Assembly: GCA_964035545.1 (NCBI GenBank)
Contig: OZ037767.1
Location: forward strand, 19,794,628 to 19,858,627
Source: Bugula neritina
Lineage: Eukaryota > Animalia > Bryozoa
Direction: 5' to 3'
DNA: 64,000 bases
Of the stretch, positions 14,301-60,832 are shown one piece after another. Numbering within the stretch: the stretch's first letter is position 1; each line of letters begins with the position of its first letter. Made by a program: the position numbers and the translations under genes. The notes below the pieces were generated by a model. It made no database searches and was not told the origin of the DNA. It worked only from the letters and a program-made list of their open reading frames with translations.

Positions 14301-15591
14301 CCTGTGAACACCTGCTTTGACTGTGAGAGTGCATTACATTTTATATTTATACTAGTGTACTCTGTTTACTAGTTAGTTTATCTAACTTTACGTATTATAG
14401 TTATTATTTGAACCTATTTACTTCCACTTTGTTTTAATCTCAATTTATGCATATATTATATTGGCTTAAACTAAATGCCTGCTCACTATAATAACAAGTT
14501 ATTATTAAATTGGGAAATTAGTTGGGCATTCAGTTTAGAATTGTAAATTGGGCTACATTACCATTAAAGCTTTACTAGTAGGCTGATTGACAATTTTTTT
14601 TATAAATTATCCATTCATTTAGTTTCAGCAAGGGTCAAAAAATCTGTTTACAATTAGTCATCACTGCTAAAGAGTTGCTCAGTTAAACTTGAATAACTTA
14701 TTGTTGTATTTCTCATTGTAAACGAATTGAAATCTAAGAAAACTTGCAATCAAATTTATTGAACTATTTCAATTTCTTACCAGCACATTCGACAGAACAT
14801 CAGCTATACCAACACTTAAAGAAAAGTATAAATCGATACTAAATTTTACATGTTCTAAGATGGGCTCTAAAATAACTCACCAACACATCCAGCTGTTTGT
14901 AGTGTTCTATTGTCTTCTCAATAATTCTCACCACATCAGATTCAATAGTAAGATCTCCAACTATAGTGATGACATCACCAGCTCCTTTACATAGACTCAC
15001 AGTCTCCTAATAAAGAATTGAAAATGTAAGAATTGGAAATCAATTTGATAGTTTTGATAGCAGTGAGGCTATATATAACTTACCTGAAGATTGAGTTCAT
15101 TTCTACCACAGAGAGCCAGTCTAGATCCAAGAGATGCAAAGTGGATGGCAGTGGCTCTTCCGATACCAGAACTGGCTCCTGCATACAACATACTCATCAA
15201 ATAATAAACTCCAACTTATATAGTATACAAGCAGCCCAAACTATATATATAATTTAGTGCAGGCTCTGTAAGGCAATTTAAGGACATCTACACCAGCCTA
15301 AACACTGTTCTATTAGGATTAGTATTTTTCTTTGCTGTTATTTTTCACTATCTTCCTCCGGCTGAAACTACAATCATAGGTTAATGCAAACCAAATCTAT
15401 CCCAGGATCCATTTGAATCATGGGACTGCAGTGATTAGTAGATTTCATGTGAAACAGGTATACCTATAGGAGTACTTATAATTTCTAATTTTTAACAGAA
15501 GAAGGCACAAGGTACAGTGATTTAAGTATAGCTCTATCTTACCTGTAATAAGCACAACTTTATCCTTAAGTTGTGAAGTACATGCAGCCAT
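11338..15591 (-). CDS. SDR paralog B, classical FabG-like oxidoreductase, 261 aa (exons 15591-15543, 15178-15084, 15006-14881, 14253-14074, 13080-12974, 12223-12163, 11505-11338)
   Basis: [37 protein letters not shown]; all introns GT-AG; frame open throughout. Confidence 0.93.
12269..12378. repeat. (CA)n microsatellite in intron 5 of gene B
   Basis: Directly visible. Confidence 0.95.
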
Positions 15592-16009
15592 TTTATCCCG
15601 AACTGGCACTGATTCTTGTGCTACCTATGATCCACTTAAACACAGCTTCACTAAGTAAAAGATATAAAAGTATAGTTGCAACTATAACTAGAGTATAATC
15701 ATAAATTTGCAGATCAATAAAATATGCAGCTGCATCATGCCAGATGTCTGAAGTTAAATATTTTTGACGTTCATTTGATGTATTATCAGTGACTGGTTGC
15801 ATTCGGAGGCCATAGCTTTCATTTTCAGATATAGTAATATATTAATAGCATAAGCTATTTATAATTATAATGGTACTTTATCTTAAGCTATGAACATCAT
15901 GCTGGCAAGATGATATCATTAGTCTGTCGTATAGACCACAGTTGTCTAACTTATTTGATAGAGGGCCAAAATTTAGAAATCAGCATAACTACTTCACTGT
16001 ATAACAATT

Positions 16010-16212
16010 ATTATATGTTTATCTATGTAGCTCTATATTGCTATAGGCTCATCTATGTAGCTCTATATTGCTATAGGCTCATCTATGTAGCTCTATATTG
16101 CTATGGGCTCATCTATGTAGCTCATGTATATTACTATATATGCTCATCTGTGTAGCTGTATATATCACCATATGCTCATCTATGTAGCTGTATATTACTA
16201 TATGCTCATCTA
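16010..16212 (+). repeat. Approximately 30-bp minisatellite (ATGCTCATCTATGTAGCTGTATATTACTAT)
   Basis: Tandem units; same family at 26450-27295 and 32700-32860. Confidence 0.9.
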
Positions 16213-57797: not shown

Positions 57798-57985
57798 GTT
57801 CGAACTCCAGTGAAGGCCAGTAGTGATGTTAGGAAGAGCATCCAGTCATAAGTGCTCCTGTGCCTCATCTGAATAAGTCCCTAGCCCGCTTTAACAAAAA
57901 CCCATTCCATCAGGGATTTCTCACAAGGGTTTCCCTCCTATATTGGGATTAGAATTCTCCCAGCATTGCTTTTTAACTGTGCAGT
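57798..57985 (+). mobile_element. 5'-truncated SINE copy at the H/I duplication junction
   Basis: Starts at B-box-like GTTCGAACTCC, then the core and the same downstream flank as the 52978 copy. Confidence 0.75.
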
Positions 57986-58557
57986 AGACAAAAGTTATTA
58001 TAGTCATGTAATCACTGCATGACCAATAGTATCATATGGTAATTTAAAAAGTGGTTAGGGTTGCTGTTTGATGTATCAGTTAAATGAATGCTATGTTAAA
58101 GATTCTTGGCCACTGCTTCTATATCATTGTCCCAGGTTTACTGGCAAATAGTCAAACTTTTATCTTCTGTAGGCATTTATTTTTAAAAGATATCAGTTTG
58201 ATGTGTTGAGAGCTGTTACAAATCACTCTTCAACTATTTATATGCCTATATGTGATAGATAAATAAATAGGGGTGTTGCATAAGTAATAACTTGTAGTAA
58301 CTTTTGTTTCAGTGTTTTATAAACTTTCAATTTTATATAGGATGAAATACAAAGTTGATCTGATGGTGAATTTTGCATGCTATAGATATATTCTGCTTAT
58401 AATATGATAGGAATATAATAACAAACAAATTCATCCTGTGTATAATTATATGGTATCATAGAATCTAATGTAGCACATATGAACATCAAGAGTGTTGCAG
58501 TAGCAGAATGATCAAAATTCTATTTGATTGTACTGCAGCTATAATGTTATGCTTTTA

Positions 58558-60832
58558 TCATACTGGAAGTTGAGGCGTGCTCAAGTGAAATCCTCCATCT
58601 AACAGAAGTTGAACTCCCGTGGTAAAACTTGACTCACTACTAGCCAGGAAAGCTATAGACTTAGCAACTTCCTCTGGTTGTCCAACTCTCCCAATAGGGT
58701 AGGCAGCTCCTGTCTTCTCAAAAAACTAAAATCAATTCTGACTTTGAACTATCATTCTCACTCACAGCGAATTCTAATAGTATGTTTACAACTGCAGGGC
58801 AGTTTTAATGAAATATTTGAAAGGCTAAAAAGATATAAAGCTCTTTACTATTCAGTTATAAATACTGACTGCATGTGTGGAAAAAAGAAAATAAAAATGC
58901 TTCTTTGAAAAGTGCAGAAAGTGTTTGCTTTACTTACGGCTGGTATTTTATCTTTTGGTATTGCTTTATCGAATATGCCTGTTTCAATGATACCTGGGCT
59001 AAAACAGATTCATTAAAATATCTAATAGAATAGTGAGATTAGCAACTTTGTCATCTAAGATGTTCAATTTTTTGTAGCAAAAAAAAGTTGATCTTATAAC
59101 AAAGCAAAAAGCCTAACTACATATAATATTGCTCTTGAAGTATGCTCTTGAATGTTACCAGATATCTGAGTGATACAAACAGTTAACAGATAGCTTATGC
59201 AAACACTTCTACTCTTGTATGATTTCTTGCTTAGAATGAAAGTCTCATTTCAATATGTTATACAAATAAAGTTAAAACAGAATACATACTTAATAGTGTT
59301 GACTTTCACTTGTTTAGGAGCAAGATCTAAGGCTAAACTTCTTGCAAAGTGATCTATAGCTGCCTTGGACATGCTGTATGCTACAGCTTTGGGACACTAA
59401 AACAGTATGGAGTTTGATAAATTAATAACATATTCATTGTTAGTAATGGGGAAAAGTGATAGTGATGGAAAGTGTTATTAAATTATGACGATTAATTGTG
59501 AGTGATTGTGAGTGATTAGTCAGGATAGTGAGTGAGAGTGAGTGATATTGGTGCTGTGGGAAACTACAACAGTCAAGTGCCAAACCTAACATAGCTAAAT
59601 GTCATACCAGCAGAGTTTCACATCTACATCAATTCAATTAGCTCCACAAGTTAAAATGTTAATTGCTTTTTAAAGTTGTATAAGATTAATGCTATAGAGA
59701 ACTTAGTACAGATATTGTCGATGCTGCACTAGATGTGATGACAATGGATCCTTTACTCTCAATCAGATATGGAACAGCTAGTTGTGTCAGATGGTACACA
59801 GCTCTGATGTTGGTAGCCATTATCAAGTCAAATTGTTCCAGAGTCTCATCTATGATGCTGTTAAATCTTACGATTCCTGCGTTATTAACCTTTATAAAGA
59901 ATATAAATACATAAATAGACTATATTTACTTATTTAACAGTTTCATAGACTCTGTTCAACGATAGTTTCTATATTTTTATATATTTAAAAGCAACAACTA
60001 GAACTTCTGACTGAAAATTAGATACAAATATACTGTATGTATGTATATGAAAGTATTGTTTAGACTTTAGAGGCTAGTGTAGATTAATGTGTTTGGTTTA
60101 GCATGAGCTGCAGGTTGTAGTAGATTATTGTTGTGTAAGACTCAGATATATAATCAAAATGAATAGCTCTAGTTCTCACCAGCACATCCAGCTGTTTGTA
60201 GTGTTCTATTGTATTCTCAATAATTCTCACCACATCAGATTCAATAGTAAGATCTCCAACTATAGTGATGACATCACCAGCTCCTTTACATAAACTCGCA
60301 GTTTTCTATAAAGAGATTATAATATAATGATGGAGCCTAATATGCTCAGCTTTAAAGACAATGCAGGTAAGGTCACAATATAGTTTATAAAATATAACCT
60401 ACCTGAAGATTGACTTCATTTCTACCACAGAGAGCCAGTCTAGATCCAAGAGATGCAAAGTGGATAGCAGTGGCTCTTCCAATACCAGAACTGGCTCCTG
60501 TATGTACAATAGTATTACTAAAACTCAATTTCTATTTGATCATGCCTAAGAGAGACGCCAAAAGGTTTTTGACATTAGAATATCCTCATCTCATGCAATT
60601 CTTTTGTAGCAATTAAATACAAGAATTGAGGCAGTTTAAGGCAGATGAAGTTTCTAATGATTATACAGCTAATCTGTAATGGTAAATTTATTTTTGACAT
60701 ATTGTATAAAGTAGAATCATTCAGTTATACAGGCACAAGAAAGTTTTACAGACACTATTTATAAATAGTAAAAAGAGAGTTAAATATAGTAATACCTGTT
60801 ATTATAGCAACTTTTCCTTTAAGGGATGCCAT
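58558..60832 (-). CDS. SDR paralog I, 257 aa (exons 60832-60796, 60497-60403, 60305-60180, 59889-59710, 59396-59290, 58998-58938, 58725-58558)
   Basis: [37 protein letters not shown]; frame open; introns align with H. Confidence 0.93.

Follow-up and report, generated by a model that had tools for sequence, protein, structure and literature searches.

[quoted passage not shown] Ectopic gene conversion has also diversified the glucosinolate sulfatases of plutellid moths (bioRxiv 10.64898/2026.10.12.758433), and conversions are known among the primate ADH1 genes (PMC3409193). In classical SDR enzymes, an acidic residue at the end of strand β2 marks NAD(H) as the coenzyme, and a basic residue just after it marks NADP(H) (PMC4785404, PMC5817062). 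The T38D change beside Arg39 turned mouse lung carbonyl reductase to NADH (PMC4785404; specificity 31 in PMC5817062), although adding an Asp to the 7α-HSDH of C. absonum abolished activity and produced no switch (PMC4785404). SDR coenzyme switches are known mostly from engineering or from deep family splits.

Here we analyse a 64-kb stretch of chromosome 3 of Bugula neritina (positions 19794628-19858627, hereafter the window), which is part of a tandem array of classical SDR genes. As in the opsin, RHCE/RHD and GOT1 cases, homogenised flanks surround an island of divergence at a functional site, and rare transfer of the island gives new combinations. The differences are that the Bugula array involves about 16 genes and two island forms instead of one pair, that the island spans only about 20 nt, and that the flanking exons, not introns, are homogenised. 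The likeness to the moth sulfatases and ADH1 lies in conversion among tandem enzyme paralogs yielding mosaic proteins; in those families the substrate range was altered (by assay, in the moths), whereas in Bugula the cofactor determinant moves and the pockets stay distinct. The change shares with T38D its position and the same Asp before Arg (PMC4785404, PMC5817062), but it is natural, is accompanied by N-to-D and V-to-P neighbours and has moved between paralogs. The mechanism is an ordinary, known conversion process, and what differs is that the travelling island is a coenzyme determinant; a literature search of incomplete coverage turned up no study that links gene conversion to coenzyme specificity.

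The SDR array and the two forms of the exon 2 block

The source genome (216 Mb; assembly tzBugNeri2.1, HiFi/hifiasm, QV 53.7; PMC11480708) carries about 16 seven-exon SDR genes in this array. Nine of them, A to I, lie in the window, and the cluster runs on beyond both edges, with U5-U1 upstream and J and K downstream. Two further copies are found off the cluster, X on chromosome 2 and Y on chromosome 6; the latter is divergent and, judging by its sequence, looks like a conserved ancestral type. The features of the window are as follows (window coordinates).

3966-6927, + strand: SDR gene A, a pseudogene with exons 3-7 only (exons 1-2 not found) and a frameshifting 5-nt insertion in exon 4
11338-15591, - strand: SDR gene B, intact ORF, CGRN block at 15084-15107, α-type intron 2
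17899-21720, - strand: SDR gene C, intact ORF, CGRN block at 21207-21230, α-type intron 2
28445-32020, + strand: SDR gene D, intact ORF, CDRD block at 29225-29248, γ-type intron 2
29151-29506, + strand: D side of the D-G conversion tract, covering exons 2 and 3, the intron between them and the first 8 nt of intron 3
33596-37139, - strand: SDR gene E, intact ORF, CGRN, the sole cluster gene whose exon 3 was spared homogenisation
38843-42087, - strand: SDR gene F, intact ORF, CDRD block at 41438-41461, private intron 2, distinct backbone
45964-50278, - strand: SDR gene G, intact ORF, CDRD block at 49566-49589, γ-type intron 2
49308-49663, - strand: G side of the D-G conversion tract, counterpart of the D tract
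53797-56839, - strand: SDR gene H, probable pseudogene, with a 2-nt insertion in exon 7 leading to a stop at 53922-53924
56407-56430, - strand: CGRD block of H, CDRD-type at every diagnostic site but 56429
58558-60832, - strand: SDR gene I, intact ORF, H-like backbone, β-type intron 2
60403-60426, - strand: CGRN block of I, acquired by conversion

The classical SDR signatures TGxxxGxG, NNAG, the catalytic Ser and YxxxK are present in B-G and I, which encode proteins of 257-262 aa; gene A has no Gly motif and gene H is truncated in exon 7. Exons were joined for translations and trees, and database searches were run with single exons. Exons 4, 5 and 7 of B each cleared alone the gathering cut-off of Pfam adh_short (PF00106)/adh_short_C2 (PF13561), and the best solved-structure matches were generic. 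Immediately upstream of the intron 2 remnant of A, where exons 1-2 would be expected, window positions 1-3900 hold GC-rich, gypsy-like retroelement sequence. Intron 2 of E is 374 nt long and holds a 22-nt tandem repeat. Outside the window, gene J (window-equivalent 69300-72800) is a broken chimera: an insertion cuts exon 5 and is followed by a second exon 5 and an exon 6 of H/I-like origin, exon 7 not being found. Gene U2 is interrupted 11 nt into exon 3 by an insertion of about 770 nt whose ends are rich in repeats, and its exon 1 lies about 8 kb upstream; it is a probable pseudogene, and carries CDRD.

The preliminary description had read the end of exon 2 as CGRN in B, C, E and I, as CDRD in D, F and G, and as CGRD in H. 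All of these endings were recovered at the places given, down to the codons of I (GTC AAT CTT CAG, as in C) and of H (CCA AAC CTG CAG, as in D). Across all genes, CGRN is found in U5, U3, B, C, E, I, J, K, X and Y, CDRD in U4, U2, U1, D, F and G, and CGRD in H alone. Intact genes of the Asp type stand on four backbones (U4; F; G; D with U1), and both forms occur inside two backbone clades (U4 versus B and C; D and U1 versus I). Two Asp-type genes, F and D, are altered within the glycine motif too (GASYGIG and GAGSGIG, window 41532-41510 and 29154-29175, respectively).

The assignment of this Asp or Gly to the classical coenzyme-determining position holds: the Asp, 18 residues past the Gly motif, aligns without gaps with that of HSD17B8 and levodione reductase, at the weak E-values of a 31-aa query. 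The GRN form aligns with C. elegans 1xhl and E. coli YciK, and its Gly motif has no internal basic residue. By these rules D, F, G, U1 and U4 are of the NAD(H) type, with Asp at the end of β2, and B, C, E and I of the NADP(H) type, with no acidic residue there and Arg directly after. The sequences make it probable that CDRD and CGRN enzymes really differ in their preference for NAD(H) or NADP(H). The accompanying suggestion that the direction of the reaction changes as well is weaker than that of preference, because NADH-dependent reductases exist; levodione reductase itself uses NADH.

Conversion of exons 2 and 3

Trees of exons 4-7 resolve the clades (U5,U4,B,C), (U3,J,X), (E,K) and (D,H,I,U1,U2,A), with F and G separate. 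The kinship of D, H and I claimed in the preliminary description is upheld, within a clade that also holds U1, U2 and A (support 98/97). In contrast, the exon 2 tree groups genes by motif. The per-exon trees are hence incongruent, as the preliminary description had expected. In AU tests, exon 2 rejects a clade of H and I (p 0.005) and one of U2, U1, D, H and I (p 9e-6), and exons 4-7 reject a clade of Asp-type genes (p 3.5e-4 without I, 5.5e-9 with I). A single history for block and backbone is rejected (AU p 5e-9 to 0.005). On the backbone tree the block must change state four times (3-5 times across bootstrap replicates). This count of transfers is approximate, since some backbones (K, J) are partial mosaics too and the deep branching order of the tree lacks resolution. 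The claim that D, H and I share introns stands for H and I, whose intron 2 is alignable as described (87% over the first 60 nt; exon 1 to intron 3 aligns at 89%), but not for D, whose intron 2 is unlike theirs and is common to G and U4.

The block swaps are explained by a pattern absent from the preliminary description, the wholesale homogenisation of exons 2-3. The synonymous difference between clades reaches 0.49-0.62 in exons 4-7, but it is 0.095 for the 5′ part of exon 2 and 0.158 for exon 3, and in these two exons it is no lower within clades than between them. In exon 3, all genes other than E and Y share about 90-98% identity, whereas in exons 4-7 identity between clades is mostly 45-85%. 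The exon 3 of E is only 68-74% identical to those of other cluster genes (synonymous difference 0.54), and orthologues in a sibling lineage (see below) show a synonymous difference of 0.14 for exons 2-3 and of 0.20 for exons 4-7. The similarity of exons 2-3 is therefore not a matter of constraint or freezing, since exon 3 of E has diverged and orthologues still differ there. Purifying selection was considered as its cause and ruled out: synonymous sites are affected, E and Y diverge freely, and the orthologue pS is 0.14. In a GENECONV-like permutation test, 52 of 120 gene pairs had a significant common segment at the floor of the test (p 0.0005), and 51 of these segments begin in exon 2 or 3.

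The end of exon 2 stands out from this homogenised background. Between Asp-type genes and the Gly-type genes of the cluster, the difference per site is 0.38 over the final 23 nt of exon 2, but 0.05 over the 72 nt before the block and over exon 3, a value equal to that within types. Fixed differences between types are confined to exon 2 sites 73, 74, 78, 85 and 86, and the changes in the block are linked, the N-to-D and V-to-P neighbours accompanying the Asp change. This peak of divergence at a functional site adjoins a divergent intron; however, the other three exon edges beside divergent introns show no island (0.035, 0.12 and 0.065, versus 0.256).

The clearest conversion tract is that between D and G, 356 nt long and 96% identical; it begins at the intron 1 acceptor and ends 8 nt inside intron 3, and the sequences on either side of it cannot be aligned. 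Three types of intron 2 are shared across clades: α in B, C, U3, J and K, β in H, I, U1, U2, A and X, and γ in D, G and U4. The swaps had been attributed to short conversion tracts. The block of about 20 nt does move by conversion, but tracts range from about 20 to about 350 nt, and that of D and G includes intron 2. Furthermore, intron 1 of U1 and that of K each end in a stretch (45-80 nt) that is B/C-like rather than like that of their own clades; some tracts therefore reach into intron 1. Bounded tracts of high identity that include synonymous and intronic sites, parental flanks and incongruent trees are what interlocus gene conversion leaves, and its occurrence here, with an island of divergence at a functional site, is real. 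Intron 2 type changes four times on the backbone tree, as often as the block, so targeted shuffling is not shown.

Gene I is a recipient. Its exon 2 is 99% identical to that of U3 and 89% to that of its sister H, and seven of the eight H/I differences in the block place I with CGRN genes (U3) and H with CDRD genes (U1). Since H-like introns flank this U3-like exon 2 and the block differences sort with U3, it is I that received CGRN, and the ending of H is the inherited state of that clade. Clustering of the H/I mismatches by itself was not significant after correction for scanning (p about 0.2).

Gene H and the sibling lineage

The preliminary description called the motif of H a hybrid, but our results do not sustain H as a functional hybrid: H has a CDRD block with one A-to-G change, a frameshift in exon 7 and an intact CDRD counterpart in the sibling lineage. 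The Gly codon of H (56429) is GGC, while Asp genes read GAC and the Gly genes of the cluster GGT. The other Asp-type sites are kept in H, with a second private change eight bases on, and T48 in H is common to Asp genes and K. A conversion tract ending between exon 2 sites 73 and 74 of H is possible.

A word search with exon 3 recovered five fragments on JGI metagenome contigs, which are short-read assemblies and may be chimeric; a pattern scan of metagenome contigs gave no match. The fragments represent a sibling lineage, because their introns are about 80-88% identical to those of this genome. One of them, L012, comes nearest to H in exons 4 and 7, reads CDRDEP and has an open exon 7; by sequence it is likely orthologous to H. 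Given this intact CDRD counterpart, H is most plausibly an Asp-type gene in decay that has undergone one transition, and not a new hybrid enzyme. The orthologue of X (L014) reads CGRNEP, so that the block is split in it, and the orthologue of K (L016) has CGRN. An H/I-type gene (L015) carries a CGRN exon 2, followed by an α intron and the beginning of exon 3, placed ahead of the tail of a β intron, and now contains a stop. The sibling contigs carry CGRN as well as CDRD, and both forms therefore occur in both lineages. Exon 2 of the K orthologue (L016:161-255) is 100% identical to the U3 exon 2 of the present genome, though the introns differ by about 15%.

Origin and consequences of the swaps

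Taken as a whole, the evidence makes it likely that local interlocus conversion of exons 2-3 carries a two-form cofactor block between SDR paralogs. Conversion would act mainly on exons 2-3, the N-terminal, cofactor-binding half of the Rossmann fold, exons 4-7 (the catalytic and substrate-pocket half) being presumably too diverged to convert freely. The block is seen to travel between paralogs, either by itself (I, F, U5) or along with intron 2 and exon 3 (D, G, U4; B, C, U3, J, K). From Y, X and E, Gly-Arg appears to be ancestral; Asp would have a single origin, from which it reached at least two further backbones; I would have been converted back to CGRN and H would have lost its Asp by a point change. 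Following the structural rules for SDRs, Gly-Arg enzymes should prefer NADP(H) and Asp-Arg enzymes NAD(H). Selection may keep both forms and hence produce the island in converted DNA, a step for and against which we see about equal grounds. The swaps themselves would arise incidentally through local conversion, with selection acting as a filter, and not through a dedicated shuffling device.

Two explanations would remove the transfers altogether. Convergent point mutations could in principle have given Asp to several backbones, as GGC to an Asp codon takes one transition and H shows the reverse, but Asp genes share synonymous and neighbouring changes (exon 2 sites 74, 78, 85 and 86), and D, G and U4 share intron 2. 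Convergence is excluded for practical purposes by these shared synonymous sites and introns. That assembly or polishing mixed paralogous exons is scarcely more credible. In the sole read check, which covered 54600-60560 and so a stretch excluding exon 7 of H, the read contigs of run X1 matched the listed unique parts exactly; no listed piece spanned exon 2 of H or I, whose junctions thus went unconfirmed. Against an artefact stand the HiFi/hifiasm assembly and its QV, tracts that lie 1-5% off their donors, and the same blocks and mosaics in the independent data from the sibling lineage.

Conversion may instead have had no fitness effect at all, the exon 2-intron 2-exon 3 cassette being conversion-prone and the seven clustered mismatches by a divergent intron simply resisting it. 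This would agree with the equal number of changes in intron 2 type and block (4 versus 4), with the broken recipients H, U2, J and L015 and with the splitting of the block in L014. We nevertheless find it unlikely, if worth retaining as the main competitor, as the other three exon edges have no island, the block was converted to the very edge of the intron in U5, F and I, and the island sits on the sole known specificity residue, with both forms persisting in two lineages. At the opposite extreme, an adaptive combinatorial system would recurrently pair cofactor preference and reaction direction with different pockets. The intact Asp genes on four backbones and the two clades holding both forms speak for it, but we consider it improbable: there is no targeting beyond neutral neighbours and no donor-only cassettes were seen, as would mark programmed or templated diversification; exons 4-7 have a pN/pS of 0.23 between orthologues, with no sign of positive selection; no intact gene showed a swap, whether among its alleles or among its strict orthologues; and direction does not strictly follow the cofactor. 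A bolder form of our preferred reading, local conversion of exons 2-3, is slightly less improbable but still doubtful. It would have selection maintain two interchangeable cofactor modules that ongoing conversion repeatedly re-pairs with divergent substrate pockets, switching intact enzymes between NADPH-reductase and NAD-dehydrogenase, with swaps still segregating in populations.

The array offers natural near-matched pairs that differ in the determinant, namely I paired with U1 or D (at about 91% identity in exon 4) and U4 paired with B or C. These pairs allow a direct test of whether a conversion of about 20 nt rewires cofactor use and whether such rewiring is selected.

Mosaic structure extends to the 3′ half of gene K, where exon 4 is 87% E-like and exon 7 is 85% U3-like. 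The intron 4 donors of H and I (window 55370 and 59709) read GTACTAAG, unlike the usual GTRAG.
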